From positions 850,693 to 914,692 of the forward strand of contig NW_003314284.1 in the NCBI RefSeq assembly GCF_000143415.4: a DNA stretch of 64,000 nucleotides, in the 5' to 3' direction. Below, piece after piece: positions 11,276-43,689 of this stretch. Positions within the stretch are counted from its first letter, which is position 1; the number at the start of each line of letters is the position of its first letter. A model generated the notes under the pieces. It had not been told where the DNA came from and ran no database searches. It saw nothing but the letters and a program-made list of their open reading frames with translations. Made by a program: the position numbers and the translations under genes. The DNA comes from Selaginella moellendorffii. Its lineage: Eukaryota; Plantae; Lycopodiophyta.

Positions 11276-11276
11276 C

Positions 11277-11598
11277 TGTTAGGAATCCCCCAATTCTTGC
11301 CACATTCTTGACTCTCGAGATACTTCCCTATTCCTGACTTTCTAATTTCCTATACGATTCCTGAGTCTTGAGCCACATTCCTGATGATGATATGGCACCT
11401 CCTCAACCTCAACTATATTTAAGCCGTCCTTGATCCAAGAGTGGTGGAGCTTCATCAACCTATAGTATATATAGGTTAACGTTGTTCCATTTCTCCACAA
11501 TTTGAATCAACGCCAGTTTAAGGTTTTTTCTTCGTTTCCACTAGTTTTTCTCTTTGTCTTCTGCATTTCCAGTCTTGATCTTGTTGGGGGTCTTGACA
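11277..11598 (+). repeat. 5' LTR of the chromovirus
   Basis: TGTTAGGAAT...TCTTGACA with a TATATATA box near 11466. Matches 16420-16767. Confidence 0.95.
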
Positions 11599-11600
11599 GT

Positions 11601-11616
11601 TTGATTCAGATTGTGG
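11601..11616 (+). promoter_or_regulatory. Non-tRNA primer-binding site complementary to the LTR R region (self-priming)
   Basis: TTGATTCAGATTGTGG is the exact reverse complement of 16664-16679 and matches 11495-11510 at 15/16. No TGG-type tRNA PBS is present. Confidence 0.85.
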
Positions 11617-12638: not shown

Positions 12639-12683
12639 GGGAAACAACCTTGTCCAAATAGAGTAGGAGCCGTTTGTTTAGAC
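12639..12683 (+). promoter_or_regulatory. -1 programmed ribosomal frameshift signal between gag and pol
   Basis: G GGA AAC lies in gag phase and the protease ORF is in the -1 frame. A 6-nt spacer precedes the stem GTCCAAATA / TGTTTAGAC. Confidence 0.75.
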
Positions 12684-15600
12684 TCCCCAAATAAAAATCA
12701 CTTTTCTTCTTTATCAAGCTCCTCACCACCTTTCATCAAAGCCACCACCAATTCCCGCAACTTCTGCATCCCATGTCTCCTTTTTTTCACCGGACAATCA
12801 GGACTTAAGGCTCTGGCGCTATTGGACTCGGGTGCAACTTCCTGCTTCATAGACACGGACTTTGCTGCCTGACATCACATTTGTCTTTCTCCTACTATAC
12901 GGGATCTGAGGGTTGAAGGCATCGGTGGGCATTTTATGTCTCCATCTTCTAGACTTAGGGAAATGTTGCCTGTTCGAGTACAATCGAATCCACTGTCACT
13001 GATATCGCCTTTAACATCATCAATAGCAAGTCCTCTTCTATGGTGCTCGACCTCCTTGGTTCCAACTACACCAACCTCAGATCTGTTGGAGGGAGTTACA
13101 GCTCGTCTCTCCCACGTCACCATCTTCCACGGCTTCCCTTGCTGCTCATCGAGTCCAAATCAGGAAAAGTTCCCTAAACTCAAATTGGGGTTTTGTTCTT
13201 GACTCTATGAAGTTTTCACCCTCTTCTTTTTCCTCTCTTCCATTTGACACTGGACAGTATCCTCATCTCATCATTCCATTTAGTCATATGCCTCCTTCTA
13301 TCTCCACAATCACTATGAAAGAACTCATTCATGAAGAACCTATTTTCCTTTTTGCTTTGCATGTTTCTCCTATCAGTCTTCCTGAGAAGTATCATGATTT
13401 TGAGGATGTGTTTGACAAAAAAAAAGCTAGTGTACTGCCTATTCATCGGCCTTATGACTATCCCATTGATTTACAGGAAGGAGCATCACCTCCGTGGGGG
13501 CCTATCTACGGGTTATCCCCGTCCGAACTTAAAGCCCTCAAAGAGTACGTGGATGAGAACCTTCCCTCGGGGTACATTCAACATTCGCAGTCCCTGGCTG
13601 GAGCGCCTGTCTTCTTTGTCAAGAAGAAGGATGGGAGTTTGCGGCTAGTCATCAACTACCGAGGTTTGAACAAGGTGACTATTTGGAACTGTTATTTGCT
13701 GCCCTTGATCGGACCTATTGGAACGCCTCGGCAGTGCCCGCTTCTTCACCAAGATCAACTTCCGTGGAGCATACAACCTGATTCGGATCCGGCTTGGCAA
13801 TGAATAGAAGACTGCATTCCGAACCTGCTATGGCCATTTTGAGTACACTGTCATGCCATTTGGCTTGACAAATGCTCCAGCAGTTTTCCAACACATGGTG
13901 AACGACGTCTTTCGGGAGTTTCTTGATTAGATGGTGATCGTCTACCTCGACGACATCCTCATCTACTCAAAAACTCAGGAGGAGCATGACGAGCATGTGC
14001 GAAAGGTGCTGGCGAAGTTGCAGGAACACGGCCTATACGCGAAGGTTGAGAAATGTTCCTTCGATTAGGAGTCTGTGGAGTTCCTTGGGTACATTGTCAC
14101 TCCTGAGGGTATCACGATGGATCCTGCCAAAGTCAAGACTATTCTCGAATGGGAGCCTCCACAATCAATGTCGGATGTTCAGGTTTTCCTTGGCTTCGCC
14201 AACTTTTACCGCAAATTCATTGATCACTGCTTTGATATTGTCCTTCCTCTCACACATCTCACTCACAAGGATGTTCCCATTTCTTGGTCTTCTGCTGCCT
14301 AGCAGGCCTTCAACACACTCAAAATGGCCTTTAGTTCTGCTCCCGTCTTGATCCATGCTAATCTCTCATAACCTTTCTTCATCGAGGCTGACGCCTTCGA
14401 CTTTGCCATCGGTGCTGTGCTGTCTCAATTCGGAGCGGATAAGGAATTTCATCTGGTTGCTTTCCATTCTTAGAAATTCCAGCTTGCGGAAATCAATTAT
14501 GAAATTCACGACAAGGAGCTCCTTGCCATCGTGGATTCTTTTGGAGAGTGGCGTCGTTTCTTGGAGGGGGCAAGCCATCAAACAACGGTTTGGATGGATC
14601 ACAAAAATCTCGAGTACTTTGCCACTTCTCGAGTTTTGAGTTGTCGTTAGGCAAGGTGGGCACAATTCCTGAGTCGGTTTGACTTTGTTACCAAGTACAG
14701 ACCTAGAAAGCTTCAAGGCCTTCCTGATGCTCTTTCAAGGCACTTCTATCTCAGTCTTAGGCCTGGTAATCCTGCCTTCGATCAACAGGATCAAATTATC
14801 CTCAGTCCTGATCGGCTTCAAGTTATGGCAATTTCCTTGGCCCCTCAGGACTCCTCCTTGATGGATGCCATCAGAAACGATCTTCAATTCGACGACCTCG
14901 CCAGTGACATTTTTCCCCATCTTCAAGCTGGACACCTAGTGACTCCCAACTGCTGGTGATTTGACGAGTTCGAGTTCTTAGATGGCTTGTTGTACCGTGG
15001 AGAGCAGCTTTGCGTTCCTGAAGGTGATGCTCGAAGGTTGGTCCTGATGGCGTGCCACAATAGTCTGACTGCTGGTCACTTCAGCATTGCGAAAACCTAT
15101 GAGCTGGTTGCACGGGACTTTTGGTGGCCTCACATGGATGACTACATCAAAGCTTTTGTTACCTCCTGTGACACTTGCGCCCAGAATAAGGTACCTCGCC
15201 ACCTTCCTTCAGGTTTGCTTCATCCCTTCTCGGTCCCTTCAGGTCCTTGGGAATCCATCTCCATGGATTTCTTGAGTGATCTTCTGAGTTCTAGAGGTTT
15301 CAAAAGCATTTTAGTTGTGATGGATCGCTTCACAAAGATGGCGCACTTCCTGCCATGTACAAAGGGGTTTTCGAGCGAGGACATGGCAAAACTGGTATTT
15401 AGGGAAATTTTCCGACTTTGTGGGATTCCTGCAGATGTGGTTTCGGATCAGGGACCTTAGTTCATCTCTCATTTCTAGCAATGGTTATTGTAGCTACTTG
15501 GAATGAAGGCCAACCTCTTTTCGGCATATCATCCTCAAACTGATGGACAGTCCGAGCGAACGATTCAAACGTTGGAACAATTCCTGAGGTGCTTCATCAA

Positions 15601-16419
15601 CTATCATCAGGATGATTAGTTCGATATCCTTCCCCTTACTGAGTTCTCCTATAATAATTTTGTTCACTCCTCCCTTCGAGTTTCCCCCTTCTTTGTGAAC
15701 TCCGGCCGAAACCCCCAATTCAATCTCTCACTTCCTTCTCCATCCGAATCCTCTCGTTCAAATCCCCGCTCTGAGGCCTTTGTCTCCAACCTCCAGGAAA
15801 TCCACAACTCCATCTCCTTCCACTTCCATCATGCTCAAGAATCTCACAAAACATTTGCCAATGTCCATCGTCAGGATTGTCCCCCTTACAATATCGGGGA
15901 TGAAATCAAGTTTGGGACATGGCCTGGTGGTGAAAATATTTCACCTGAGGAGCTAGACTCTAAATGCCTTGATCCTTTTTCTATCACTGCCATCATTAAT
16001 CCTGTCACTTATCGCCTTGCACTTCCCTCCTCATATCAAATTCACCCTATTTTTCACTCCTCTATCTTTGAGCCTTATATTCCCAATCTTATTCCAAATT
16101 GGGTCATTCCTCTGCCTCCACCAGTGCAGCTCGAGGATGGGTATGAGTACGAGGTTTAGGACATCCTTGATTCCAAGATTTCACGGTCTAAACTCTACTA
16201 TCTGGTAGACTGGAAGGGTTACGGACTTGAGGAATGCACTTGGGAACTTGCGGACAACCTGATTCATTCTCCTGACCTTGTTCAGGACTTCCACTGCCGC
16301 TATCCTTCTTGTCCCAATCCTCATTCTTTTTCTCCATCTCCCATCCCTCACCACCCATCTCATCCTCCTCTTTGTTCTCATTCACGTCCTCGTTCCACTC
16401 GTTCTTGAGGAGGAGGTGC

Positions 16420-16767
16420 TGTCAGGAATCCCCCAATTCTTGCCACATTCTTGACTCTCGCCAGATTCCTGACCTACAGACCACATTCCTAACTCTCAAG
16501 ATACTTTCCTATTCCTGACTTTCTGATTTCCTGAGTCTTGAGCCACATTCTGATGATGATGTGGCGCCTCCTCGACCTCAGCTATATTTAAGCCGTCCTT
16601 GATCCAAGAGTGGTGGAGCTTCATCAACCTATAGTATATATAGGTTAGCCTTGTTCCATTTCTCCACAATCTGAATCAACACCAGTCTAAGGCTTTTTCT
16701 TCGTTTCCACTAGCTTTTCTCTTTGTCTTTTGCATTTCCAATCTTGATCTTGTTGGGGGTCTTGACA
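16420..16767 (+). repeat. 3' LTR of the chromovirus
   Basis: TGTCAGGAAT...TCTTGACA. About 17 substitutions and 3 indels relative to the 5' LTR. Confidence 0.95.
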
Positions 16768-17009
16768 CCCACTAATCTATAGGACTCAATCATTAGTATG
16801 TACAAGTTGAAGGAGGATGATTTGTTATAACTTAAACACAACTATGCACACATTGAATAATATCATATTGCATCTCCAGCCAATAGAAACACTTATATAG
16901 TCATATGCCAATATTCTATATGCCCACAATAGTGCAGTATGATTAGAAAGATGATTAATAAAACAACCAAGATATTATACCTTGCCTAGGAAGTGTTACA
17001 TATCATTAG

Positions 17010-17096
17010 AGTAGGAAAATTTTGAATGGCCACAAATTTGACAGAATTAACTTACAAACCCTCATAAAAAATATGGTATCCAAAATAAATTATATC
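17010..17096 (-). mobile_element. Distal piece of an old Ty3 RT split by the 17097-31296 insertion
   Basis: Minus strand reads DIIYFGYHIFYEGL*VNSVKFVAIQNFPT, continuing KCIFVSKD found at about 31300. Confidence 0.7.
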
Positions 17097-17698
17097 TATA
17101 GCACATGTGGTTTTACCCTTTATCCTATGTTGATTTACCATAGGATAACACCACGAAGTAGAACCTAAACCCTCTATGTGCCACATGTTGCATGCCACAT
17201 GCCACATGCCACATGTTCAAAGGATAGTGGTGTGGAACCTGAAATTCAGGGGCTTGAGCCACTAAATGAAGGAACGGTGCCAAACTCCCAAGCATAGAGC
17301 CAAGAAGCAATAGCACTAGAGCATGGAATGAATCCCAAGGATACAGTCTAAGAAGTGAAGGGATAGGAGCATGGAGCAACTTGGATCAGTCTTAGAGCAA
17401 TTAACATCCTAATGCCAGGACCAGCACGCAAAATAGAGCCAAACGGAGTCTGGCACTATTTCGGCATATCGGTGGCTTAACGTGAGGATATGGGTACTCC
17501 ACTAGCTAGCATGGAATGGAACTTTGGCTTAGACTCAAGCCGGACGCAGAACAAAGACAAACACATAAGCAGAAGCTAAACTATACCTCAGGTTGGTTGG
17601 CCATGCCCAACCTACTCACTATCCTTACTATACATTTGGAATTCACGACACTCTCGCCCCTTAGAGAAGATTAATATCCTCGTCGATGCATACTTGAG

Positions 17699-18633
17699 TG
17701 TCGCGAATGTGACTTCGGGTATCGAAAGATACTTGTCGGCCAGTCCTTATAGACACTCTTTCCTTACTGCCATGACGGCAAGAGGTCGGTACAGTTGGAT
17801 CCCTTTAATAGCCTCTCTTGTGCTAGTGGAGTTAACTGGGCATTTCGAGTGTACTTAGACCGGACAAGCATAAGGACAGAATTCCTACGTGCTATTAACT
17901 AAGCATATTTAGCATGGTAAGGAGTTCTGTCTCGTCATGTTTTGCACTTGCTAGTGACAAGAACCCTCGCATATTAAGATTAGTCCCTCAATATCGCTGG
18001 ATGATAGCTTACCGTGTCTGCCAAACACCCTCGCTATCACGCTCTTTGTGTTGGTCGGTCCCAAATGTTATTTATGGAAAGTGTCTAAATTAGCTCATTT
18101 GGCATAGCTACAGAATGTAAAGATTAGCCCGAACACAATGGTGTTCATCCCGTGTCCAAATTCGCAATCTAGTGCCATTCCATATTTAGTAAATTTTGAG
18201 TTTGTCCTAGAGACTAACTCTTGATACTAAAGGAGGCTTGGGGTGAAAGCCTAAAGCGTGTGTTCGTCAAGGGGGGGGGGGGGGGAGGCTACTATGGGGG
18301 GTTCCAAATGTATAGTAGGGATAGTGGTTGGAATGCATGTTCGACTACCTGAGGTATTAGTTTTTCTCCCACTGGGCTGTGTCGCTCTTTGTTCTGCGTC
18401 TGGCTTGGGTCTAAGCCCAAGCTCCATGCTGCTCTAGTCGGTGGGGTACCCTCCTCCTCGCGTTAGGCCACTGGTATGCCAAAATCATGCCAGACTCCGT
18501 CTGACACCATTTTGCATGTAGGTGCTAGATATGGGGAGCTGGTGCTCGTGCGATTGTACCAGACCCTTGTTTCGTAGTGCAACGGGCTTGGAGTTCGGCT
18601 CCAAATTCAGGTGCGCTACATTTGGTATTAGAG
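17699..18633 (+). mobile_element. Isolated LTR plus PBS of a sister subfamily, inserted antisense into element A
   Basis: TGTCGCGAATGTGAC...GCGCTACA (17699-18620) is followed by TTTGGTATTAGAG. The U3 matches the element A LTR and the 3' end matches 58033-58343. G15 tract at 18271-18285. Confidence 0.85.
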
Positions 18634-21001
18634 ACTCAAGTCTAGACCACTGGCAAGGAAACAACTCTAGAAAAAGTTCATGGTGATCACACTATATGAG
18701 AAATGCATCAACTTAAATCAGTAAGGGTAATCTCTTTGTCTAACGCAAATGCATTACTAACTCAGACACCTTCCGGCCATCGCTGACAAGGAAATGACCA
18801 ATGGAGTTAGTCACCCTTACTGTTCTGGTTGTCACCCCGCTTTCAAAAGTGTGATACACCCTTGCCCGTAGAGACATAGAGAGAAAAGCCAAAGGCCCTA
18901 ACTCTCATGAGCAAAGAAACCAAACCTGTCAGTAAGGTTTAGATAAACTACTGTAAACAAGTAGTTAGAGTTGTTTACATAGTCACGCCTTTTGAACGAA
19001 AGAAGGAACATCAACAATGAAGCGGGTGATATGACTAATCGACAGTAGCAACCTCGAGACTTGAGATTTCACTATGCATACGAAGTGTTGAAGCCAATCT
19101 ACCTATACTGGCCCAAAGTCAAAGATCAAGAGATGGACAATATCAAAGTCATAAACAATAATATCTTAGAGACTTAATTATCAATGAATATATCTTAGAT
19201 TAAAACACAAAAGTATTCCAAGTAAGTTATCATCTGATAAATTAGTATTAGAGTATAGAAACCACCAAGATCATCATAATTGGAAAACATAGAATTTACT
19301 ATCTAAAAAAATTCAATAGCAAGTGTATTATCAAGAAAACTCAATGAGAAAACTTAACTACCAAAAATTATAGAAAGTATGCCGAACAACTTACTAAAGA
19401 TAACTCAAAGAACACAAAGTACTATCGGCTGGCAAGCAAAATGCTTGCAAATGTATCACCTAAAGGAAATAACATCTCAATCTATCAGAACTAACTCAAG
19501 CAATAATCAGCAGAATAGAAAGAATATGGTAAAACTAACAAACACTCATTTATGCCAACTATCATAAAAGTCAATCTAAATAAATCTCGGTTAACAATAT
19601 AAAGGAATTCAAGTTTCTTAAGCAAGTGTTAGCAACATCCTATCGATGTCTCAAACCCAAGAGATTAATCCAGAGCAAACCATAAATAACATGCGGTATT
19701 GCAAGAAAAAGAAAACCATAAGTCATCAAAGAGCATAACTAATTATCATGAAAGAACATCAATCATCCTATCAATGAAGAGATGCATAATCATTATTGAA
19801 GAAAGAATCTACCATCCCGAAGAATGGCAAATTATTCCATACCAACAATAATCAAGCAAAAGCCTTCACAAGGACAATCAACTATCCTAGATGATAATTA
19901 ATCATCACCAATGATTGCCAGATGCAAATACTAACTTCAACATTGAAGTTAACAAGCTAAAATGCCTTCCCTAACAACTTCTAACAAATGGAACAATGAA
20001 CATAAAAACTCAAGAAACCAAAAGCTCGAAGAAGTCTATACCTAAATCTTGCCTAATAATGATTACAAGTCTTGCATAAACTAATTTCAATGCTAAAGAA
20101 GGAATCGTGGCACAATCCATAATATCCTTCTCAACAGATTTATAAAATAAACTTCATAATGCTAAGCTAATGAAGAGCATATTTGCATCAATCCAAAAGC
20201 TAAGCACAATAGAGTTATGCTCAACAAGCGATTACCAAATCAATCCTCCATGAATCCATTTATAACAAAATGTAACTCACTTCATAACAAGCATAAGAAG
20301 AATCATTAATGATTGATATATCCCAACTCAAATTCAATAAAGATTCAAACATTCTCATATCAATCACTAACTCTTCCTTTCGTAAAACTAGCATAGTTCA
20401 TGATTGAATCACTTTTCAAGGAAAATCTAAAGCTCAACCCCTACTAAATAATCTTATCTAGAACACAACTAACTCAAACTTGCCACTCAACTCATTTGAA
20501 CACTAACATAGTTGCAACTAACAAATGCACAAATGCCAATAACACAAAGCCATAGCCAAATCATTAACACTATGTCTATCGAGATTAATGAAACTCAATA
20601 TCAATCCTTGGAGAGACATCTCATTTCACTCAAATCTCAACATCAACAATATTAACGAAAAGGCATCACTTCAATGTCATCAACACTATAACAAAACTAA
20701 AAGAAAGCAAGAGTGAATCACCACTTAAAACTCTTTAACAACTAAGCTAACCAAAGTTGAAGATAGTATCTGAGACCAATTCTTCAGCAAAACTCAGTTA
20801 TAAATAAAACATCATCAAAGAATGATTCACCACATCCAAGACTCAATGAAATCCAACACTACAAACTAAACATAACCAAATAATATTGATAGAGGTAGAG
20901 TTGATATACCAATATGAAAAAACCATGTAAGTTTAACGACATGATCCTTCGCAACACCATTCGGTAAAGCAAACCTATCACTAATAAATCTTCATCGAGC
21001 G

Positions 21002-27565
<6,564 letters not shown>

Positions 27566-30500
27566 AGCAAAGCAAGTGTCAATAGTCTTCAACAAAGTCT
27601 ACAAGCAATCACTAATTGCAAAACAACTAACAATCACTCTTTCAACTTGCCTTCATAAGACCCAACACTAAACTCATGCCATCAAGTCATACTTATCCAA
27701 CATGAATGTAATACCTCAGGTACGAGATAAAGATTCATGGACAAGCATAAACTAAATGACTATTCAATCTAACTCAACTGCAATAAGCTCACCAACTCGT
27801 CTAACTAATAGCTCTGAGCATGCTTTGAAGGGGTTAGCTATGCATAATCAACACTTAATCAAAACTAAAGTGAAGATCATGAGATGAACTCATATTGGTA
27901 CAAAACCTCCTCATAGATAAAGCTATAGTACAGGTATCAACATCTCAACTTTAAACAACTAAGTTGAACATCACTATCCTCAGCCAAAGTGCAGGGCCAC
28001 TAAGACCAAGTCAAGATTAGTGAGAGCTCACTACTCTCATAGAGTTTAACGAAATGCAAAGTGTAACTTACCATTAAGCACAATGCTACAGAAGAAAGGC
28101 ACAAAGGTCACCTTTCTAAAAAAACACAACAATCATTTTTCTACACCAACTCCAGACTCTATCCAACTCAATTGCTTTAACCCCAAAAGTCAATATCCCT
28201 TTCGGGCCACATCATACAAACTACCTATTAAGATCTAAGCCAACCGAAGTCAACTCCAACCCTTTCACTAGTTTGTATTAGCTTATGAAAACAGAAAGGT
28301 TTTCGGGCAAAGTGATCAACAAATCAGCCATTGGAAAAGTCTAAGAAAATTTAAAGAAAAATTTTCCATCCTAAAGAAAGAATAACTTTTAGTCTAGGAA
28401 TACAAATTTTCAAGACTCAACTAACTTCCTCCTACTTACTACTACACATAGGTTCACCTCAACACAAATTCTTATGATCCATCAATATGCTTAAGCATCA
28501 AACATTTTTGCCCATATAACCGACATCCAACACCGACATCTGCAAAACGCAAAGTGAACATTCAAGGCTTGATCACGAAGACCACATCTTCAGATATCCA
28601 CATTACACTAACACTTTTTTTCAACCACCTTCAAGATCTAATATGAAGCCAAAACACTAACAAGAAAAATGATATGGAAAATCAAGCTCTAAAGAAAGTT
28701 CCTCATCACTCAACATAACAATGCCACTTCTACTGACATAAGTGTTAGTAATGTTAATGCCTCAATTACACATCTTTTTCATTCAATAATCTACTCCAAG
28801 TGCAATGGAATTATTGATGACCTATAACAAATAAATGCTACAACCTTTTTCCAACACTTCAATGGGCAAACTTAAAGACTAAGGAACCAACTTAAGTTTA
28901 GCATAATGGATCACTATTGAGAACTTTAGTCAAAATTACTTCAATATTACTATATGTAAGTAGATTAGCTTCATTATCAACCACTTTGGTTGATCATCGT
29001 TCAACTAAGCAACTTCGTAAATATATTGCCCATTATCACATGGATATGATATAAGTATCACAATGACTTGATTATCAATTGAGTAACACCACGAGCAACA
29101 CACATGTCATTACTTCAAAGGTTTATGTAAGCATCAAGTGCCAACTGGATTCAACAAAATGCAACATAAATGCCACACTTCACCAATAGAGATTTACAAC
29201 ACTCAACACCACTAACTTTTGCTCACAACACAGACAAGCTCATGCCACCCTTTATTTGACCAAACTCAAAACTAATCCAACATCAAGCTATTCAAGGAGC
29301 AATAGCAAGGTTCCTTGGAAAAGAATTAAGCATTGCAACCCAAGTCTTCAATAATAAGCCTAGACAAAATGGCATAGCATTTCATCGTTATCCATCCCGC
29401 AATTCACCATTTGTAAGAGCACTATAACTAACATGCATTAAGGTAGGGACTCTTGATTGCATAATGTGAACACAAGCAATGAGTTAACATTTCATTGCAA
29501 ATCATCTCTCCAAGAAGAGAAAATGATTTACATGTTTGATCCTTCGTCCCTGATGACTCTCTTTTCGATCTCATCTTTTGACCAAACCTCAAGTTTGCTT
29601 CCGCACTGCCTTCAGTCCAATCCAAGAAAAGTTTATGAAAGAGTATGGCAATAACTACTTGAACCAATAGATTATTCTCTACAGTCTTGATTGATCCTTT
29701 TGTAATCATGCCTAGGAAGGTTCCACTAGTGTCATGCTAAACAACTACGGACCAGCCTATTTGCCACTCATAGTAAACCCAAGGAGGTTTACTTTTACTC
29801 ATGGTACATAGAACAACTCATGAAAACATCAATAGGCTATCATTAATCCTGCCAACTCAAAGGGTAACTTTGAGTTGCTAATGTGCCTCACTCACGAGCC
29901 CAAGCACAAACTTATGCGAAACGGAATATTTCAATCCATCTTATGAGCCCAAGAGCAAACTCATATAATATGGTACAAAAAGGTAACCAAATCCATACCC
30001 AAGGAATGATTGCGAAGCCTTTGCACCTAAATATATACCACTCGGATCATTGTTTTCATCTCTACGTATGCAATGAGACTAGTTGCCTAATCTTATTGGA
30101 TAGTACTCGCTGAGACTCATTCTCTGATACCAAATGTAGCGCATGTGGTTTTTACTCTTTATCTTATGGTGATTTAACATAGGATAACACTACAAAGTGG
30201 AACCTAAACCCTCCATATGCCATGTGTCACATGTCATATGCCATGTGCCACATGCCACATGTCCAAAGGACAATGGTGTGAAACCTGAGATTCAGGGCCT
30301 TGGGCCACTGAATGAAGGAACAGTGCCAAACTCCCAAACATGGAGCCAAGGAGTGATGGCACTAAAGCACGGAATGACTCCCAAGCATATAGTCCAAAGA
30401 GTGAAGGGATAGGAGCACAGAGCAACTTAGATCAATCCTAGAGCAACCAACATCCCAAGTATACAAAATAGAGCCAAATGGAGTCTGGTGTTATTTTGGC

Positions 30501-31296
30501 ATACTGGTGGCCTAACGTGAGGATATGGGTACTCCACCAGCTAGCATGGAATGGAACTTGGGCTTAGACCCAAATTGGACACAGAACAAGGACAAACACG
30601 CAAGCAAGAGCTCGACTATACCTTAGGTTGGTTAACCATGCCTGACCTACTCACTATCCCTACTATACATTTGGAACCCCCCATAGCGCCCGTTCCCCCC
30701 CCCCCCCTACCCCCCTGCCCTAAGGAACACATGCTTTGGGCTTTCACCCCAAGCCTCCTTTAATATCAAGAGTTAGTCTTTGGGATAAGCTTGAAACTTA
30801 CTAAATATAGAATGTCCCTAGATTGCAAATTTGGACATGGGATGAACACCATTGTGTTTAGGACAATCTCTACATTCCATAAATATGCTAAATGAGCGAA
30901 TCTAAACACTTTCCATAAATAGCATTTGGGACCGAAATGAGACTAACATAAAGGGCATGATGGTGAGGGTGTTTGGCAAACACGGTAAACTATCATCCAG
31001 TGATATTGAGGGACTAATCTCACTACATGAGGGTTTTTGTCACTAACTAGTGCAAGACACAACAAGACAGGAACTCCTTACCGGGCTAAGTATATTTAGC
31101 TAATAACATATAGGAATTCTATCCTTATGCTCATCCGGTCTAAGTACACTCGAAATGCCCAATTAACTCCACTAGCACAAAAGAGACTGATAAAGGGTCT
31201 AGCAATACCAACCTTTTGCCATCATGGCAGTAAGGAAAGAATATTCAAAAGACAACTGACAGATAACTTTCGATACCCGAAGTCACATTCGTGACA

Positions 31297-33250
31297 TTAT
31301 CCTTAGATACAAATATGCATTTTAATCACTTCAGCTTTAAACTAACTTTTTGCAATTGATTTAACACCTTTTGAACATCACAAATATGCTCCTCCCATAT
31401 CCCTTCTGAGTGGATCAAAACATCATTGAAGAAGTTGGTAGTCACCTTTAACATCTTGCAAAGAACTTCATCCACTATCCACTAGAAAATCACTAAAGTA
31501 TTGTTCAAACCGAATGGCATTACCAAAAACTTGTACAAACCAAATGATATATAAAAAGCAATCTTGGGAATATTCTTTTTGGCCATTAGCACTTGCCAGT
31601 ATCTAGAAACAAAATCTAATTTGGTGAACTAACAACTTCTCCCCATACGATTTAGAAGATTAGTATCGTGAGGAAAAGGGTATATATATGGGATAGTTAC
31701 TTTGTTTAAGGGATGACAATTGATGTAGAAACTAATACTCCCATTAGACTTCATTACAAGATGAGGTTCACATGCTTAAGGACTTCGTGACTTTTGAATA
31801 ACACCCTTTTTCAGATCTCTTTGATGTTTGTATGTAAAATCTTGATCTCCTTTGGTGACTGATGACGAACAGGAACCTTGATTGAACAAGCATCCCTAAT
31901 TGGAACAGGATGATGTGTTGCAATCTTGGCCCTAGATGACAAATTAAATTTGAAAAGATTAACATACTCCTTCATAAGTTAGTGAACCACTGCAACACAA
32001 AAATTGTCAAAGGGATTTAAAGAGGGAATAAAGGAACAAGATGGAAACATAAAAGGAAATAATGGGGAGACAAAAATGATGAAAACAGAAGTAGAAGGAC
32101 AAAAAGGAATAGAAATGAAAGGAATGAAAAAAAGATAAGGAATTATGAAACAAGGGGAGAAGCCTCAAAGTCACATTTGACATGATTACATGTAATCAAT
32201 CTATACCAAGGATGAGGTCAAAAGTTTGACTTGGCACCACTCTTAATAATAGAAGCTTCACCCTCAACATCACCCATACACAAAACTAGGTTCACCTCAT
32301 CCCGTGCACATGCATGTGTACAGTTATGCCATAAAGAATAAAAACTAGCTTTACGACATGACGCAAATGTAGATGGCAACATGTGGCAACACACTAAACA
32401 ATAGAAAATAAACTCAAGCCTATATTATCTAACACAAAAAGAATAATAGAAGACCTTTTGTTATAAAAATGATATTGAGAAGTAAACACTAGATGAATTG
32501 ATGCCAAATAAACCCTTTAATGATACTCCTAAAAAAAAATGAATGGATCACCAACTTATTGGCACAAGGAGCCCCCACTACTCACGTGACTCCTCGTTTC
32601 CTAGAAACATCTTGTTATTTAGAGCTTCCACTATAGCAGCATCAATAAGACATTGTTAACGCCAAAGTCTCCACCCAAGAAATAAAGTACACCAATCTAG
32701 AAAATGTTAACAACACCGATAAGTGTGACCAATTTCATCACACGCCCAATAGTGGACATCATGGCCATGACTACATCCTTACTTTTGTTTTTGAACTTGA
32801 GCAATAGTAGCATCAACTTCCATTAAAATAGAACCATCTCTCATATGAAGTGGAGGTAAAGCATGTGCAATAAAAAGTGGAACAAGTAATATCTCATACA
32901 ATGCACCAAAGAGAATGCTCTAATCTGTATAGTGGTTGCACTTAAACCATTGTACCATTGTAACACTGTCTCTTAGAGACATGTGAAAACTCAAACAAAC
33001 ACTAAACATCATCTCAAGAATGATATGTAACAATCACCATAAAATGATTAAACTAATGGTATATATCATCCATAGAATTCCTATAGAAGATCTTTAGCCA
33101 AATGCAAGGATTGGCAGCAATAGCAGGAGGAGTTGTACCATATGCTATGAATACTACCATCAACTAAGTTTGATTATTCAATTGCAACTGCATAACATCG
33201 AACAATTGCACTAATTATTGCTCCATAATTAAAGGAGGAGGAAGCTACTA
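31297..33250 (-). mobile_element. Old degenerate Ty3 element (RT recognisable; protease and gag eroded)
   Basis: Minus strand reads FGLYKFLVMPFGL and KLK*LKCIFVSKD. The upper boundary is approximate. Confidence 0.65.
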
Positions 33251-33901
33251 TGTCATGAAGATGAAAAAAAAGGAGAAAAACAAAAGAGAAAAAAATAAGT
33301 AAAATCTAGATGATGCTAAAGTTTAATTTAAACCAAAATCCCAAATTTAAACACTTCTTAGGAACAATTAAAGTTGCCCTCTCCTCCTCTGAATGAGTGC
33401 ATAAACTATGAAAATGGAAATACAAAATGTGCATCTTTATTCAAAAACCTTAGGTTATATATAGGAGTGAGTGGTTTGGATTGATATCAATTTGATGGCT
33501 ATCAAAATCCACTATACTAATATAAGTGTATAGCTGTTAATATTAGTATATAGCATTATAACCGTACACTTGAACCTTATAGATACTAATTTTGTTCCTT
33601 CTAAATAAATCTTGATAATATAAAATTACATTTGTTTAAATTTCCTTCACAAACTCATGCCTCTTTTATTTTTATTTTTTATTTCTTTTCTCATTCTTTT
33701 GATAAGTGGTTCCACTTAGATCTCACATATGTAATAATCTAATTAAAAATGATTTTCTATTAAGCTCTGAGTTTTCTATGCTACTAGAAATAGTAGAAAA
33801 GGAACAATTTCTTTAAAAAAGTAGTTTTTAATTGATTGAAGGTATTAATTGTACTAATCTAGAACTTTAGGAGATTATACTTGTTAGTTAAGCTGCACTT
33901 C

Positions 33902-34354
33902 ATGGGGTTTTTAATATTTTTTACTTTACTTATAAATATTTTTAAGTACTTTGTAAGTATAATTTTAAATGACTAATTTTTACTCAATTTTTCTATATTT
34001 ATATAGGTTATAATACATAGTGATTTTGTTGATACATGTGATATTAGTACAATGAAGCTTATAAGAATTGATGATAATGATGAAAGTAAAGGTTGGCAAT
34101 TTGAAGCTGTTTGTGAACCTCTTATAAATCAAAAATCAACCATTACTCTTAATAATTGTATTACAAATACTAATGGGAATATGGGTCATGGTCGTGATTT
34201 TCAATTATCATGTAATAGTGCAATTGTAACAATATCATATGAAGGTTGGGTCAAATTAGCAGCAGTATGCAGTACTTTTGGTGGTCTTCCAAATCCAACT
34301 ATAATTTATTTAAATTCAATTCTTGTAAATGTAAATGGTTATCTTAAATGTTAA
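33902..34354 (+). CDS. Secreted cyanovirin-N homology (CVNH) lectin-like protein, 132 aa; exons 33902-33952 and 34007-34354
   Basis: Signal peptide MGFLIFFTLLINIFKYF|VIIHS spans a 54-nt GTAAGT..ATATAG phase-0 intron. Two pseudo-repeats: DFVDTC..FEAVC..STITLNNCITNTNGNM and DFQLSC..LAAVC..G..TIIYLNSILVNVNGYLKC. Six Cys; AATAAA just after the stop. Confidence 0.85.
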
Positions 34355-34699
34355 ATTGAATAAAACCAATAATATAAAAAGAACACATTCTAAAATTTGT
34401 TTTTGAAAAAATTATTAAATAAATTATGTTATAAATATGAAATGATATAGTAAAGTTATTTATAAAATGTGAAACTAACCATTATTTCATTAAGTGATAA
34501 GGAATTTTATTTAGAGGTTGATTTTTCATATCATTTTTCTTATTACTGTTTTGACTTCACATTTGATCTTAAAAATGAATATAAATATCCAAAATGTGAT
34601 CTTTGTGATTGAGTCTTGGATTTGAATAATCAATTTATCCATACTTCTCCATGTTTTTATATATTATACTTAGTGTGTTTCCTTTCTTTTTGACATATA

Positions 34700-35060
34700 T
34701 ATAACTTAATAATATGAGTTTAGTGTTTGGGTTTTATAAAGGTGAACTAAAGAATGATTGTTGGTTATTTGGTGACTAATTATTATTTGTATACTTTGTC
34801 AAGGACTATTAGGATTTTATTTAGCTTGATAATGATTTAGTAGTGATAGGCTTGCTTTACCAATGTATTATGGAGGATTATGTTGTTGGGCTTGCATGGT
34901 TTTTATATATTAGCATATTGATTCCATCTCTATCAGTATTATTTGGTTGCATTTAGTTTTTGGTGTTAAATTACATTCAGTTTAGAATGTGGTGATTCAC
35001 TCCTTAATAATTTACCATTTGTAGCTGAGTATTATTCCAAAATTAATTGAATAAGATATC
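34700..35060 (+). mobile_element. Fragment homologous to the internal region of element A, lacking the element B insertion
   Basis: Aligns to the reverse complement of about 27566-27680 joined directly to about 20760-21001. Confidence 0.75.
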
Positions 35061-35334
35061 AATAACCTTAGTTAGTTTAATTAGAGAGGTGATTCTCTTT
35101 TAACTTTATTCAAGTATTAGTGGAGCATATATTATCTATCTCCCTTTAATGAGAGAACCTTTAATACTTATTTTATCCTTATTTATCCACCACTCTATCT
35201 CTCTACCCTTAAGCCAATTAAATAAAGGAGCCTTTAAAGTTATTTTATCCTCATTCATCTTATAATTGAATTTATCAATACTTCCATTATATAAACTGAT
35301 TATTCCATATGAAGTAATTAGTCATTTTAGGGAA

Positions 35335-35750
35335 CTAGATTATACCTCAAGTTAAATAGCCATGCCTAACCTATACTATCCCTACTATACATTTGGAACC
35401 CCTTCAAAGGAATGCATACTTTAGGTTTACACTAGGAGTTAGTCTCTAGAACAATCACAAAAATTTATTTAATATAAAATGGCATTAGATTATGCATTTA
35501 CAACACTATTGTGTTTAGGATAAACTCTACATTCTATAGATATGCCTCACTAGAAAATTTAAACACCTTCCATAAATAGTTATTGAGACCAAAGAAAACC
35601 AACACATATAGTATGATAGTGAGAGTATCTTGGCAAACACGGTAAGTTATCATTTAACAAATATTGAGGGATTAATCTCAATATTTTTGGGGTTTCTAAC
35701 ACTAGTAAATACAATCCAAATCAAGTATGCTTAATCAATAGAACTTAAGA
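35335..35750 (-). mobile_element. Degraded family-A LTR fragment
   Basis: ACTATCCCTACTATACATTTGGAACC and GGCAAACACGGTAA blocks are shared with 30650-31050. Confidence 0.8.
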
Positions 35751-35774
35751 ATGCTATTATGTAACGCATCTCTC

Positions 35775-36530
35775 TAATTGTTTATTATCTCCTCTAAATA
35801 ATTTAGATTTTACTATATCACCTAAGTATTTTCATGACCTGATCTTGGGTTCAAGATGAATGAGAAAATCAAGCTCTCTAATTTTTAAAACCCCAAAGAA
35901 AAATGAATTTGTGAAAAATAACAACCAAATCATTGAAATATTGTGTTTGGGATTAAATGGATACCTTGCATTGTGCAATACCTTGCTATAATACACCAAC
36001 AACTTAAGCCATTTTACTAGTGAATGTCATCTTTTGTAAGATAATCTTCCCCATTGACACTCCATAATTACATAGCACTCCAAAACATAGAACAAGAGCT
36101 GGGATAATGATCATAGTTCAAACTTTTTATAAGTAGAATTCTGCCATAATCTAAAAACTTTTTTAGAGAATATTATATATTGTGAAAAGCTAATAGATTT
36201 AACTAAATCATTAAACTTTTAGCAGCTAGAAAATTTATGTATATATCTTTTCTTCTGATGTATAATATCATTCATTAGATGTAAAAAATTTATTTACTTA
36301 AATATATTAAGCATAATATACAGCTCTAATTTATTTACTAATAGAAAACATAGTTAAAAAGATCTAGTGCAATTATAAAATAAATATACCATCACTTTAT
36401 TATGTTAGTGTCATCTAATAAGCTTTTACAGAATGGTGGTGGTGCTTGGTAGTTGGTAAACTACAAGGTACTTGACAAAATATAGATATTATCCTTTGGA
36501 ACTAGATAAAATTAGCTATCCAGACCAGAA
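35775..36530 (+). mobile_element. AT-shifted LINE-like RT relic (inverted second copy at 56200-56947); may extend to about 37800
   Basis: A stop-riddled frame gives LGFKMNEK, WIPCIVQYLAI (YLGI-like), LTLHNYIAL (LS..GR..L-like) and GGGAW in LINE order. The repeat itself is directly visible; the LINE identity is tentative. Confidence 0.5.
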
Positions 36531-37847
36531 TATCATAGTTCTGATTGAGAAAGATGAGCCCTTATGACTATAACTCTTTTTATGCTTCATTTTTTAAAAA
36601 CAATTTTAGGTACAGATTGTGTTGAGTATTCCATTTCTATCACTTAGTTTATAAGTCGTGTTCAAATAGTTCATAACAATGGAAAAAAAATATTTACTAA
36701 TCATTATTTTAATTTTAACTGATTTGAAAAATGGCATCCATATCTTGATAAATTACAAAACTTGTTTAAGCTCATTGCTGTAAGCAGGATTATAAATGTT
36801 TACTAGTGTTTTTATTAAGAAAATTGTGAAAAAATCAAATGCCTATTTAAACTATTAACAGAAGATTTGATTTAATAAAGAATTAGTTGTGTTTTTATGC
36901 TATCTACAATTGTCACTACCAAAACATATGCCTACTATGAAATATACTAGTTAGCCATGATTTTTTTTATACAATTGAACCATGATTTCATCTTTCAAAA
37001 TTTACTAATAGAGATGTCTAAGGGAATTAAGTCTGAAGATCTTGTCAAATAGAATTCATAAGAAATAGGTGTAGGATACCTTAAAAAAATCCAAAAAACT
37101 CAAAATTAAAAGGCACTCATTTTAGTGGAGTGAACTAATTTAGTTTATGATCTTTGGCATAATTCCCTGAAATTTTCTAAAGAAAAACGCTAATAAAATA
37201 GATATCATAAGCTCAAATTCTTGATTTGGATATTGGCATGCTTTTCTTTAATTTTTAATTCAGTAATTTTTTGTATAATATTTAAACTCATTATGCTATA
37301 TAAACACTTTGAACTATGTCCCAAATACTCCCTTTATTGTGATAGAGGTACTGTACAGATAATAGCCTGTTAATAGGATCATTCCACTTAAGAAAGTAAC
37401 ACTTTTGCGACTAAAGAAAAATCTTTTTCCTACATTCGCATTGACTTTTCACTGTAGGACTTCTCTATATTTATATTTTACAATTAGATTTATATATTCG
37501 ATGAGAAAAAGTATTTTATGATTTCAAGTGTATTTTTTAAATAGATCTGCAAAGAAAAAACACATTTAAAGACTTAATTCTGTCTAGGCTAGCATAACTA
37601 GATTCCTTGATAGTTTTACAGGTATTGACAAAGCATATTTAATAGATGTAAATCACATCTATTGGAATGTTACATTTTCTTGTCACGTGTTATGTTGGAA
37701 CAATTTGATTTAAGAGTCAATACCATAGTTTCATACACAAACTTTATCCCTTTTCTCCTACTTAGTTTAATTTATATCCTCTTAGCTTTTATACAAGAAA
37801 CCCCATTAGAAACTAAAAAGTGAAACTATGTTGTCAAAATATTTTAT

Positions 37848-38060
37848 TATAGTTTAACTATAGATTATATTGTTTTTTATATAATTTTAATAAATTATAT
37901 GTTATATCCTAGTTTATTGTAATAATATTAGTTTATCATAGTTTAATATTATAGTTTAATGTAATGAAATAAATTTCATAGTTTTAAAATTTCAAGTATA
38001 GTTTAAATAACATAGTTTTTTAAAGTAATATATTGAATATAGTTTAGATAACATAGTTTG
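37848..38060. repeat. Degenerate tandem array of an ATAGTTT core
   Basis: About nine TAGTTT copies with irregular AT-rich spacers. Confidence 0.6.
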
Positions 38061-38564
38061 CACTTCAAATAAGGGTAAGATCTATTGGATCTATTTTCAT
38101 CAAAGCTTCACAAAATTCCTCCAATTCAAGTTGAAAAGTTTGAAGAAGATCCTTTCTATTCCAGTCGCTAATTGAGAAGCCCAAGGACCACAGAGCCACT
38201 AGCTTTGAGTGCCTTTCAAAATTTCATATGCAATATAACAATCAAAGGATAAAAGTAAAAGATTAATAGTCAAGAATAGGCCTTTGAAATTATTGAAGGG
38301 AATCCAAATGATAAGTTAAACAAAGACCCACTATATAGTGGATGCTAACAGATTATAAAGAAAAAAACATGTTTCCCAGAATAAGATTCCTATATGCTCA
38401 GATTTGGTGAAAAGCAAAAGTTTTAAGATATGGAGTGGCAAAGTAGCCAAATGAAAGGGATATGGACAACTTTTAAGAATTATGGTTAAGTGGAAAGGTG
38501 GCATGAAATAAAAAAGAGAATAATAATGCCCTTAAGTAAAAACCTTTCTAGGTGTAAACAATTA

Positions 38565-39090
38565 ATTTTTCCATTCTACTTTAGTCACTTAACCACACCT
38601 CCGACCACTTGAAGGAGTTTCATTTATAACCTCTATAAATCTAATTTATGACGTGGGGCTTGCTAGCCCTAAGAATGGCATCTATACCACTCAATCGTTG
38701 CACTTGGTCTAAATGCTCCACATTTCCAATCTCATGACCAACACCCCAAGGTACTACCGACATATTAACTTATTACGCTAAGGCTATGCCCCTTCACCTT
38801 GGTCACACTAATGGTCCAACACCACCTACATCACAGTCCTGTCTCTCAAAGACTAAGCCATCTATTTATGAGTGATCATCGTAGATCCACTCCTTAGCAT
38901 CCTTAGGATGCCTACGGATATGGGGAATAGCCTTCCCAAATATCACTTTTTCGGTCCCCACTAAATCCCTTTTTGTCCATGGCCGTGTTCGCCAACACTA
39001 CCACTGGATCAAAACCTACAGCCCGACCATTAAGTCTCACTGTCCTCTAGGACTTCCTCACCATGTGACTGTATCCTTAGTCGCCACACT
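38565..39090 (-). mobile_element. Decayed retroelement internal segment (protease-like); direct repeat of 63583-64000 and partly of 39833-39990
   Basis: AATTTTTTCCATTCTAC..CCGACCACTTG..GGGAATAGCCTTCC is shared. The minus strand has a GIDAIL protease-end-like motif. Confidence 0.6.
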
Positions 39091-39139
39091 AAAGGACTAC
39101 TCCTCTTCCTTTCCACAGTTCAGGATTACTTTGTCTCAG

Positions 39140-39395
39140 CTTCGGACTCGGTCTTAGTCTTGGCCTCGGTCTTGGTCTCGGTCTTGGTCTCGGTCTCGGT
39201 CTCAATCTCGGTTCCATTTCGGACTCCATCTCAGGTTCATCTCGGACCCCATCTCGAACTCCATTTCGGGTCCATTTCAGACTCCATCTCGAGTCCATCT
39301 TAGACTCCATCTCAAACTCCATCTTGGGTCCATCTCGGAGTCCATCTTGGGTTAATCTCGGACTCCATCTCAGGTCTATCTCGGACTCCATCTTG
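39140..39395. repeat. 6-bp (CTCGGT) then 12-bp (TCGGACTCCATC) tandem repeats
   Basis: Directly visible units. Variants are mostly CpG transitions. Confidence 0.85.
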
Positions 39396-40769
39396 AACAC
39401 TTCTACGTGTCATGTGTTGGTTCTTTTCTGTCCCTTTTCTAAAGACTCACTTATTGCTCACTTCGTGCTTCTTCTTTGAGCCCTTCATTGGGAGTTCCAC
39501 TCCCACTCTCGACTTTTCGAGTCGGAGATTTTAGTCCAAACGTGTTACACTCATTTGGCTTTTGCTTCAGCCACTACCATGTGGCACCCTTTCAGCTCCA
39601 TGTTGAGACTTAGGGATTTGTGTCTCACACTAGGATGGAGAAGTGAAATTTGCACAACCAATATCTATACCACTCAGCCTATACACTTGGTTTGCATGCT
39701 CCACATATCCGACTTTATAATAGACACTTTAAAAATACCACTAACACATTAGCCCATTATACTAAAGCTATGTCTATTTACATTTGTGTCATTAGTAGCC
39801 AAGACAACTTGTGCCACAATCCTGTCTTCTGAAGACTAGGCCATCTATCCATGAGTGGTCATTCCATAACCACATTTTAGCATCCTTAGGATGCCCAAAG
39901 ATATAAAAAACACCCTTTCCCAATATCCCTTCTCCAGTCCCCACTAAATTCCACTTCATTTATAGTAATGCTCACCAACATTGCCACTGAGTTAGGATCC
40001 AAAAGTTTAATTTGCCAACTTACCACGTCTATCCAACCACCACTACCTTAACCTTAGTTAAGTTCTTTTACCAAGGTTCCCGTTTATTGTACTAGCTTAT
40101 ACTTGGTTTACTTAGTTTCAACTACTCATTACAAGAGCAACGAAGTGTTAAGCTATCCATCCACGAATTCCCAAATTCTTTCTCAATCCCCCTCCCTATG
40201 TTAGATTGGACTTAAAGTTTAACTACACTCACCGCAAATACAAGCAGTTGAACACACCAAGTTTCCAGGTTCCTAATATCCCATGGTACAATAAAACTTA
40301 ATTATGGGACTCTTTAACTCCCAAGCCTTAGATACATCTCTTACTTCAGGACCATGGAGGGAAACACTATAACTTAATAACTTAGTATAAATACCCTTAC
40401 TCTTCCATTTCCATCCCAAAGAGAAGGCTTAAGCCCCTAGGAAGGAGTGAGGACTAATAAATTACATAGTACTCAAGTAGAGCACCACTCCATATGAGCT
40501 AGAAGTACTGTAGTTGATTCCCTTTTTGGGAGTGGGAGCTGCTTTTGAGCACTTCCTTAGATGGCATTTTTGGCAAGTCCACACTCACTCCCATTTAAGG
40601 CTTTTAACCCCAATCCCATTTTCAACTCAATTTGGAAGCACCACTAAAGAGTCCCTTCAAGATTAGTTCTTAAACCTCACTATCCTTATTATATTTTTAG
40701 AACCCTTTGCAACCCTTTCCCCTAGGAGATGATTGCTTTGGGCTTTTACCTTACGATTTGTATTAGTAT

Positions 40770-41030
40770 TTGGATTCAATCTCAAACTTAATCTTGGATT
40801 TGATCTTAGACTTAACCTCAGACTCGGTCTCAAACTCGATCTCAGACTCAACATCGGGCCCAACCTCGAACTCGGTCTTGGACTTGATCTCAAGTCTTGA
40901 ACCCAATCTCGGATCTCAAACTTAGTTTTGAACTTGGTCTTGGACTCAATCTTGAACTCAGTTTCAGAGTTATGATCTTGAACTTAGTCTCGGAATCGGT
41001 CTTAGACTCAATTTCAGACTTAGTCTCATC
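40770..41030. repeat. More decayed 6/12-bp tandem array related to 39140-39395
   Basis: CTCGGT/CTCAGA/CTTGGA hexamer periodicity. Confidence 0.75.
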
Positions 41031-43689
41031 TAATAAACTCTTTATCATTTTAATTGTGATTTCAAATATCCTTTAACCTATGACACCTCAGGGAGTTAAT
41101 TCCTTACAACTTCACCACCCATAAAAGAAGTTCAATGTCTACAGGAACTTGGAGAGTTTTATGTTCTAGTTGCAACTTATAGCCTTTAACCCATAATTTC
41201 CACTCCTTCAACTTGTTTTTTAGTCAATCTTGGTCCTCCATAGTACCCTTTGAGTACCTCTTAATTTTAAAATGCTTTCTGACACTCTTTTTCAAATGTT
41301 TGACCACTTCCTTTATGACATAAGACTTTTAACTATTTGCAGAACAATCAAATGACTTTTTCTAACTCCCTTTTCATCTTCCCTACTTGTGTATTGGGTA
41401 GTAGTGCTAATCCCTTAGTAGAGCTCTACCCTTGACACTCTCTGCATACCAATCAATCCACCACTAAACAAAAACCTTAATCACAATTTTTTCATGAAGT
41501 CCTTATATCAGTAGCTCCAAAGTTGCTGCAAAAGTACCCCTATGTGAAATATGGGGGCAAGGAAGTTCCCCATAGCTCCTTTTACTGTCATTAGAACCCT
41601 GCACCCTCTAGGAAGAGGAGGCTAGATGCTTCAATAGAGAATGTTATTTATAAGTGTGTGTTTTGCTTGGTGGACTACCTTGCTGGCCATGCTGCACAAT
41701 ATCAAGATTTTTGCACCACAATAGAGCAAGTAATATATTAACTAGTGGTCATTAAGCAATGCATATGCATTGGTGAGCTTATTGAAACAGATGGATTCAC
41801 AAATAGAGCCACTTTAAGAGGTTCCAAGGCAGGTAAATAGAAGTAAGGGAAATTGCATAATTGAAAACACGCTCTAGTCAAGGATTTTAGAGCATGTTTC
41901 CCTAATGGATTTGAACCATACTTTTGAGACTTTCAAGGATGATATGCTTTGCTTCTTTTTTACTCTTCCAGATGATAAGCATGGCTTCGCTTATTGCAGA
42001 AGTAAAGGATTGGAATGGAGAGCTTGGTGGATAGAAAAATCCATCAACATCATATGACAAGAATAAAAGGACAAAATGAATAAATTGAAAGCAAAATTAT
42101 ACATTTTTATTAAACATTAAGCTAACCTATATGTATTATGTATTGGCAAGTTTTATCTCATTAGCATAAGTAGAATGTCAAGTTCCCATTATGAACAATG
42201 ATGGCAAAAATATATTACAATAAATACTAAAGACTAAAGCAAACAAAGTAAGAAAATTATATATAACTGGAGTATACAAATGTAAACTAGCCTCAAAAGA
42301 TCAACAGATTGAAAGATGCTAAAGCCCATCAGATGCATTCAGGAATGTGTTTTACAGGATGGTAAGTATTCCATAGCTTTCCAATAAGCCCAAAAGACAG
42401 TTCACGATGAAATTTTTAACCGAGACTGGATAGCATATATTTAAAATATCCTAGTATATTCTAGGATATTTCTCATGCTCTTAATCATTTGCAATCATTG
42501 TTTGATGATGATAAAAACCATAATTCCTTGCCATGCAGATAGATATGTTCCCAAGCTGGAGATCGATGCTCCACGACCTCCTGGACAATACCAAGGAGTC
42601 AGCGCTATGCGGCCATAGTGAGAGGGTAGCAATTTTCAACTCACCAAACAAACAACGCGCATGAATGAACTGTGAAGAAGGTGTGAGGTGTTTGCTGTAA
42701 ATTTGCTTATCGGCCGTTGAGTTGGGTGTGTGCAGGAGATGTTAGGGTATTGCGCTCGGCTCAGGGAGTTCATTGTGGCGTAAATGGGAGGCAATTACCA
42801 ATTACAAGCTGTTTATAAAGGTCACAGGACTGATTTGATTGTGTATCTTGAGTGGTGAAGGTAATATTCTTCAGCTGAAGAACGCAAGGAAGCAAGGTGA
42901 AAACAACGATGCAGAGGTGGGTTTGAGTTCAAATTTCTTCAGAAGGTGGTCACAGAGGTTTGTTCTTGTGATGAGGAACTCATATAGGCAAAAAGTCATG
43001 CATTTGTGCATGGGATCTTGATCTCAAGCAATCATGCTTAAAGTTCTTTTCAAGCTCAAGGACAGAAATGCATTGCTTTTTCGAGCGTGTCCTTTTGTTG
43101 GTGTGAGGAATGTGATTATCAGCAGCATTCACATGCACTCCATCCCTGGCGGCTACTACCATTATCACGACCATTAGGATTTGTCAATCAATCTTTCAAT
43201 GTTCTTGTCAACAGAATTTCTAACAGCATTCTCCAGATTTGAAACGCAAAGCGTTGCTGCTACACAGCGTAGCAAATCATCAAGTGATCCTTAGGAGTTA
43301 AAACTTATGTGGTGTGATTTAGAGTAGCAGAGCTCGATCCACTGGCCCAAGCACTCTCAGAGTGTTAGATTTCTTTTGGTTTTCTTTTGGTTCCCAGTGT
43401 TCTGGAGCGTGGAGCGAAGAGCAACAGGGAGCTGGAGCGAGGAGCAACAAGCAAGTTTCTCTTGTCTCCAGCTCTTGCTTGGAGCCTGGATCGACTCGAG
43501 GCAGCACGGTGCCCAGGTATTTGTCATCGACTTCTGCGCGGACGCCGGTGCCAAAGATGAGAATGTAGGCCAGAGATCGTTGCCCGTGTCAGCTTTGTAT
43601 ACTCCAGTCCGGAGGAGGTGGTGGAGCTCAAGATCTCCAAAGGCAAAGTACTGGTTTTTACTTGGCACATTAACTTAGGGCTTTAGGTG

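Follow-up and report, generated by a model that had tools for sequence, protein, structure and literature searches.

How does a small gene in which nearly every codon ends in A or T keep an open reading frame among retrotransposon remains that have decayed around it? The question is raised by a locus of Selaginella moellendorffii lying within the 64,000-nucleotide stretch of DNA analysed here (the window). A preliminary description had proposed an intact gene for a secreted CVNH lectin, standing alone in a 35-kb block of transposable elements, held by purifying selection and comparable to effector genes in the AT isochores of fungi.

An intact two-exon gene

The locus (33902-34354, plus strand) contains a two-exon gene of 132 codons, encoding 132 amino acids, that starts with an ATG at 33902 and ends with a TAA stop. 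Its parts are as follows.

33902..33952, plus strand: exon 1, 17 codons, with the start codon and the hydrophobic core of the probable signal peptide
33953..34006, plus strand: intron predicted from the sequence, 54 nt, phase 0, GT-AG, with a CTAAT branch-like motif; interior 11% GC
34007..34354, plus strand: exon 2, with the end of the probable signal peptide (five residues), the mature 110-residue CVNH domain and TAA; 5 of 111 synonymous third positions are G or C
34359..34364, plus strand: AATAAA, at chance expectation for the 3′ flank, no poly(A) evidence

As first described, the list of open reading frames captures the gene only in part, covering just 34052-34354, the final 100 codons. 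The intron is canonical: its donor is the sole GT(A/G)AG within 33850-34060, the branch-like motif lies about 30 nt upstream of the AG, and reading through the unspliced intron leads into stops. Exon 2 has 115 codons and finishes with a cysteine followed by TAA; the probability of an open frame of this length at the local composition is about 4e-5, and the remaining five frames carry 5-21 stops each. All 132 codons are free of stops and frameshifts and the protein has six cysteines, both in agreement with the preliminary description; all six cysteines lie within exon 2. The AATAAA at 34359 was discarded as a polyadenylation signal because 1.4 such motifs are expected by chance per 116 nt of flank. 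No Rfam match was found in 33700-38500.

Hydropathy analysis revealed a hydrophobic stretch over residues 1-21, with a plausible I-x-S site before the start of the domain; a charged n-region is absent. The hydrophobic stretch and the site suggest that the protein probably has an N-terminal signal peptide cleaved near residue 22 and hence is secreted. A signal-peptide-like start is also found in the fern CtCVNH (PMC3645700).

The encoded protein is predicted to adopt the cyanovirin fold

With exon 2 as the query, the Pfam CVNH profile (PF08881) gave 33.7 bits against a cut-off (the gathering score) of 24.5, aligning residues 19-114 with profile positions 8-102 of 102, and a sequence search matched exon 2 to cyanovirin-N (CV-N) chains. 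The domain consists of two pseudo-repeats.

34022..34189, plus strand: CVNH pseudo-repeat 1, exon-2 residues 6-61, with Cys 11, 36 and 51 and, around residues 20-30, an inserted acidic loop
34196..34351, plus strand: CVNH pseudo-repeat 2, exon-2 residues 64-115, with Cys 69, 88 and 115

The two halves align with 14 identities, beating 2000 of 2000 shuffles. While fold prediction from the single sequence failed, a model of exon 2 with a pLDDT of 83.6 was obtained from a 4-sequence alignment of CVNH matches (exon 2 plus three distant CVNH rows), on which it depends. The best 25 rows of a Foldseek search with this model were all of the CVN family (TM about 0.7-0.8), and alignment with VIA-align reached Z 15.4 (rmsd 1.6 over 101 residues), compared to Z of 4.7 or less for unrelated folds. 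The model adopts the cyanovirin fold, with two three-stranded sheets plus hairpins. By profile, pseudo-repeats and predicted fold the protein is a CVNH lectin, upholding both the domain identity and the pseudo-repeats proposed at the outset.

The predicted fold is shared with solved members of the family (CV-N, PDB 1iiy/2rdk; Ceratopteris CrCVNH, 2jzj; Cyt-CVNH, 5k79) at Z 12.7-15.4 and rmsd 1.6-1.9, as are the single domain, the two pseudo-repeats, the four CV-N cysteine positions, and the N-x-D/N-G and F-x-x-T/S-C motifs in both halves. However, identity to the solved members is just 22-30%, and the protein differs from them in an insertion of about ten residues that forms an acidic loop in repeat 1, in two extra cysteines and in a shorter hinge. 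Cys 11, 36, 69 and 88 (exon-2 numbering) occupy the CV-N disulfide positions; at the places of Cys 51 and 115, CV-N has Val39 and Tyr100. Since Cys 51 and 115 recur together in the closest fungal match (P0004, below), we infer three disulfides: the two of CV-N and a third between Cys51 and Cys115.

In CV-N, sugar hydroxyls are bound mostly via backbone carbonyls, with the side chains of Asn42 and Thr57 playing a key role (PMC8091458). The counterparts of these two residues are Asn54 and Ser68 at one predicted sugar site, and a second site predicted by pseudo-symmetry contains Asn108 and Thr10, the counterparts of CV-N Asn93 and Thr7. With the key side chains thus represented at both sites, both could be functional. 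Other pocket residues are changed compared to CV-N: Glu41, Glu56 and Arg76 are lost (replaced by Thr, Leu and Phe, respectively), Asp44 and Asp95 are both Asn, Lys74 is also altered, and the hinge is one residue shorter. These substitutions, together with the acidic loop insertion, suggest that sugar specificity may differ from that of CV-N.

Silent sites have lost nearly all G and C

Codons ending in G or C number 13 of 132 (GC3 about 10%), or 8 of 127 when synonymous ones are considered, and in exon 2 the synonymous figure falls to 5 of 111 (GC3s 4.5%). By comparison, the long open reading frames of the neighbouring gene islands have GC3s of 0.55-0.76, and annotated S. moellendorffii genes have a mean GC3 of 61%, mostly within 0.35-0.95 (PMC11276031). 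The extreme A/T bias first described is therefore real. At the first two codon positions of exon 2 the GC fraction is 0.39 versus 0.045 at silent third positions (Fisher p 6e-13). This gap, along with the retention of fold residues and cysteines, points indirectly to long-term purifying selection under AT-ward mutation. The claim that such selection maintains the gene gains indirect support for this long-term component, and the gap says little about the present day: in simulations of neutral decay, the frame, the ATG and the six cysteines together survived in 48% of cases at 2% substitution, 20% at 5% and less than 1% at 20%, so that an intact frame outlasts 5% neutral substitution one time in five.

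The interior of the intron (11% GC) and the 3′ flank (13%) are also AT-rich, with wider flanks at 22-31%. The GC3s of exon 2 is lower than the GC of any 111-nt window of the repeat block (minimum 10.8%). Older LTR copies give an equilibrium GC of 0.16-0.21, which the GC3s likewise falls short of (p 2e-4 to 1e-6), though this estimate is biased upward by changes that predate insertion. The simplest reading of silent sites that are more AT-rich than their surroundings is age, since a gene under selection outlives the non-coding DNA around it.

Alternatively, A/T endings might themselves have been selected in part, either because fewer methylatable cytosines leave the gene expressible in silenced chromatin or under a tissue-specific or low-translation regime. 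A GC3s below every window of the block and below the estimated equilibrium speaks for this model, and exon 2 retains a single CG, with none of the 30 codons that precede a G-starting codon ending in C. However, the GC of the intron interior is similar to that of the silent sites (p 0.15, not significant), loss of CG is equally a product of methylation decay, and the equilibrium estimate is biased upward. We consider selection for A/T endings improbable.

The surrounding repeats show methylation-type decay

The gene lies in a gene-poor block of repeats that alternates, within this one window, with gene-dense, GC-rich islands at approximately 0-8.7 kb and 43-52.6 kb.

8800..43200 (approximate), no strand: repeat block of about 34 kb, nested Ty3/gypsy relics, CpG-depleted, between two GC-rich gene islands
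30135..31296, minus strand: second-family LTR lying upstream of the gene; on visual reading, its end carries a motif resembling a tRNA-Met primer site
34490..35082, plus strand: decayed LTR fragment starting about 135 bases past the stop; its family also occurs at 20.7-21.2, 27.4-27.8 and 28.6-28.7 kb
35332..35719, minus strand: decayed LTR fragment of the second family, more AT-rich than most; copies at 17.1-18.6, 30.1-31.3, 57.2-58.4 and 63.3-63.6 kb

Several LTR families are represented in the block, along with broken remnants of gypsy gag and integrase. Its CpG observed/expected ratio falls as low as 0.08 at 34-36 kb, compared to 0.8-1.05 in the islands. The preliminary description was right about the extent of the block and about the gene standing alone in it, and no further CVNH copy was found within the 64-kb window. 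The block is not AT-rich as a whole: GC per kb ranges from 0.21 to 0.48 in a mosaic, in which young elements have 45-48% GC, comparable to that of genes, and the pocket at 33-38 kb has 25-29%.

Pairs of repeats differ chiefly by transitions, which affect 29% of CG, 18% of CHG and 11% of CHH cytosines. When changes among LTR copies were polarised, 112 GC-to-AT changes were counted on 664 sites (104 of the 112 being C>T or G>A) versus 73 AT-to-GC changes on 1084 sites. In the LTR fragments adjoining the gene, divergence from related copies is 14-29%, and these fragments have lost GC compared to their other copies (101 against 44, p 2e-6). A ranking of C>T changes in the order CG > CHG > CHH is the expectation from methylation decay, to which a lack of GC-biased conversion could add. 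The sequence comparisons thus support C>T decay of a methylation type in the repeats around the gene, much as the preliminary description had supposed. Mutation of the RIP type, which acts at CpA, was rejected on the basis of this ranking and of a (CpA+TpG)/(ApC+GpT) index above 1.1 everywhere. Capture of the gene inside one intact transposon is likewise unsupported, because the flanks are unrelated fragments and no matching pair of ends was seen.

Several other features of the block were recorded. Its youngest gypsy element (11276-16767) is broken yet still has 46-48% GC; its LTRs are about 93% identical, matching CCCAC motifs mark the two outer ends, and parts of gag and integrase are present. 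A 757-bp segment of 27% GC is present as an inverted duplicate, 91% identical, at 35775-36530 (minus strand) and 56199-56947 (plus strand). A frame in this duplicate (ATG at 36114 on the minus strand and 56614 on the plus strand) begins with a signal-peptide-like sequence followed by a cysteine-containing stretch, with several stops in both copies; it has no Pfam match and its GC3 is not low, and it is possibly a dead secreted gene or a non-autonomous element. In one LTR copy, (TC)n repeats extend over about 190 bases (21149-21343), where the matching copy at 27.5 kb has a short TC stretch only. A second very AT-rich pocket (9000-10200, 22% GC) lies at the left edge of the block and contains no long open reading frame or repeat match within the window. 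Degenerate tandem arrays of 6/11/12 bp occur at 39127-39411 and 40779-41028, and the repeat to which they are assigned (38553-39989) has another copy at 63573-64000.

The gene islands contain features of their own. Two long single-ORF PPR genes (2542-4467, minus strand; 4509-6419, plus strand) are arranged head to head with their start codons about 40 bases apart. They are preceded by an NXPE4-like single-ORF gene (845-2215, plus strand), whose 3′ end is 74% identical to 16-330, which suggests a tandem paralogue. An exon of G3PDH in the window is 73-86% identical to land-plant proteins, which together with the tandem-repeat PPR genes marks the host as a land plant; the compact islands, the short intron and the high GC3 are in keeping with S. 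moellendorffii.

A diverged member of an expanded family

Among 5.8 billion proteins, none shares three 5-residue words with exon 2. A HMMER scan of 1.8 billion representatives returned two real CVNH matches at E of about 2e-5, a Roridomyces protein and one other, and no plant CVNH at E 0.001 or better. A further word-index search for homologues recovered the Roridomyces protein only, and four contig scans found no relatives. The top representative match (P0001) was discarded as a repetitive protein without CVNH motifs; P0002, P0003 and P0006 gave long multi-stretch matches and were taken as spurious without inspection. The gene thus appears to be unannotated in the protein collections searched and far from annotated plant CVNHs, and the earlier suggestion that gene finders may miss such genes is in line with its absence from public protein sets in both the word index and the HMMER scan.

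The best real match is the Cyanovirin-N protein KAJ7617276 of Roridomyces roridus (P0004; E 2e-5, 47% over 73 residues). It resembles the present protein in length (131 amino acids), in its signal-like N-terminus and in the same six cysteines, including the C-terminal one, but it is encoded by a basidiomycete gene of 55% GC and is too distant to be a donor. For S. moellendorffii, 27 cyanovirin genes are listed, making up 12% of its lectins (PMC6362431, supplement). The present gene has its domain, and probably its species and family, in common with this set, from which it is strongly diverged and apparently missing as an annotated entry. It is a very diverged new member of a CVNH family already known and expanded in this species.

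Could the codon usage instead be that of an AT-rich donor (a fungus, amoeba or bacterium), acquired by horizontal transfer and still unameliorated? The GC3 far beyond the annotated host range (PMC11276031), best matches that are not from plants (the Roridomyces protein and one other), and the view that CVNH domains have moved between kingdoms (PMC6362431) are all in keeping with such an origin. Nevertheless, the 1.8 billion representatives contain no donor-like close relative (best real E 2e-5), the CVNH loci of the two relatives have 45-55% GC, Selaginella has a native, expanded CVNH family of its own (PMC6362431), and the intron and flanks are AT-rich as well, with local repeats drifting in the same way. 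Taken together, these results make transfer very improbable.

Occurrence of the locus in sequence runs and its expression

The sole indexed run that contains 33700-34600 is X1, a very small contig set of 5 million letters from 2020 that contains 73% of the locus words. The presence of the locus in just one indexed run and a composition unlike that of host genes would be compatible with a contaminant or mis-assembled insert. Against this, the gene lies between fragments from two LTR families that are found several times elsewhere in the window, GC shades gradually from the gene into its flanks, and X1 shares its species label with the RNA studies considered below. An artefact of this kind is hardly credible.

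No RNA-labelled run containing the locus is on record in the index, and 19 RNA-like contig sets with the same species label, from nine studies, contain next to none of its words. The blank contig sets argue against broad, high expression. As a guess, a set as small as X1 that contains this locus could be RNA from a tissue in which it is expressed.

The same observations are relevant to a model in which the gene is a silent or recently dead copy, its protein-coding signature having been earned by an ancestor in this AT-rich family. The copy would then have reached the repeat block by duplication, or lost its activity there, so recently that it has not yet broken. Absence from RNA-labelled runs and from the 19 contig sets would follow, the LTR fragment about 135 bases after the stop would suit such a setting, and the simulated survival of 48% of frames at 2% substitution and 20% at 5% is compatible with it. 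However, the flanking LTRs are 14-29% diverged and less than 1% of frames survive 20% substitution, an argument that holds only if the gene has been resident equally long. Moreover, a near-identical source protein is absent from the 5.8 billion searched, and X1, with 73% of the words, may be RNA. A silent copy is therefore judged unlikely.

Proposed explanation

We favour, with a probability of roughly 0.6, a model in which the locus is a native CVNH lectin gene that is functional or was so until recently, and in which its codon bias records a long stay in methylated repeat DNA. The gene unit would predate the LTR fragments that now flank it, which would explain why it is more AT-rich than they are. 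During this stay, C>T and G>A changes would have removed nearly all G and C from the intron and from silent sites, with selection holding codon positions 1 and 2. The protein would be secreted via its N-terminal signal peptide and is predicted to act in the cell wall space, where it would probably recognise high-mannose glycans at the surface of fungi or other microbes by their Man-alpha-1,2-Man ends. It would probably be switched on only in certain tissues or upon challenge.

By itself, the gene is one more member of an expanded lectin family, perhaps with a new glycan specificity. A synonymous GC of 5%, where the annotated genes of the genome average 61%, indicates the extent to which silent positions in plant repeat DNA can lose G and C without loss of the protein, and that genes of this kind escape annotation.

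Comparison with known systems

The AT-blocks of Leptosphaeria maculans (PMC3105345) offer the closest comparison. Shared features are a lone, small, cysteine-rich and probably secreted gene among decayed transposable elements, A/T-ending codons and a TAA stop, little support for expression, and alternation with gene-dense GC blocks. In contrast, decay in L. maculans is driven by RIP at CpA, whereas the ranking here is CG > CHG > CHH, as for plant methylation; its AT isochore is uniform, whereas the present block is a mosaic of 25-48% GC; and the present gene belongs to the host and encodes a recognisable domain. The parallel drawn in the preliminary description thus survives in the alternation of repeat and GC-rich blocks and fails for a uniform AT block and for RIP. 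Known environment-facing, GC-poor gene families are similar in being GC-poor, but they form large arrays in cis, while the gene here is a singleton in its window; by analogy, low recombination could be an alternative cause of GC-poor sequence.

Strong divergence from all known CVNHs fits faster adaptive evolution, and a two-speed compartment for such genes is plausible by analogy from this one window. More tentatively, with the balance somewhat against it, we raise the possibility of a whole class of functional, small, secreted singleton genes (CVNH and others) in methylated repeats, with silent GC of about 5%, that finders trained on 60% GC3 would miss. A targeted literature search found no description of such a gene class in Selaginella. 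Were the class to exist, censuses of lectins and secreted proteins in S. moellendorffii would be too low, and with its members one could test directly how mutation bias, loss of GC-biased gene conversion and codon selection act in heterochromatin. The plant would then possess a host-side, methylation-driven counterpart of the effector compartments of fungi, and its defence repertoire would far exceed the annotated one.
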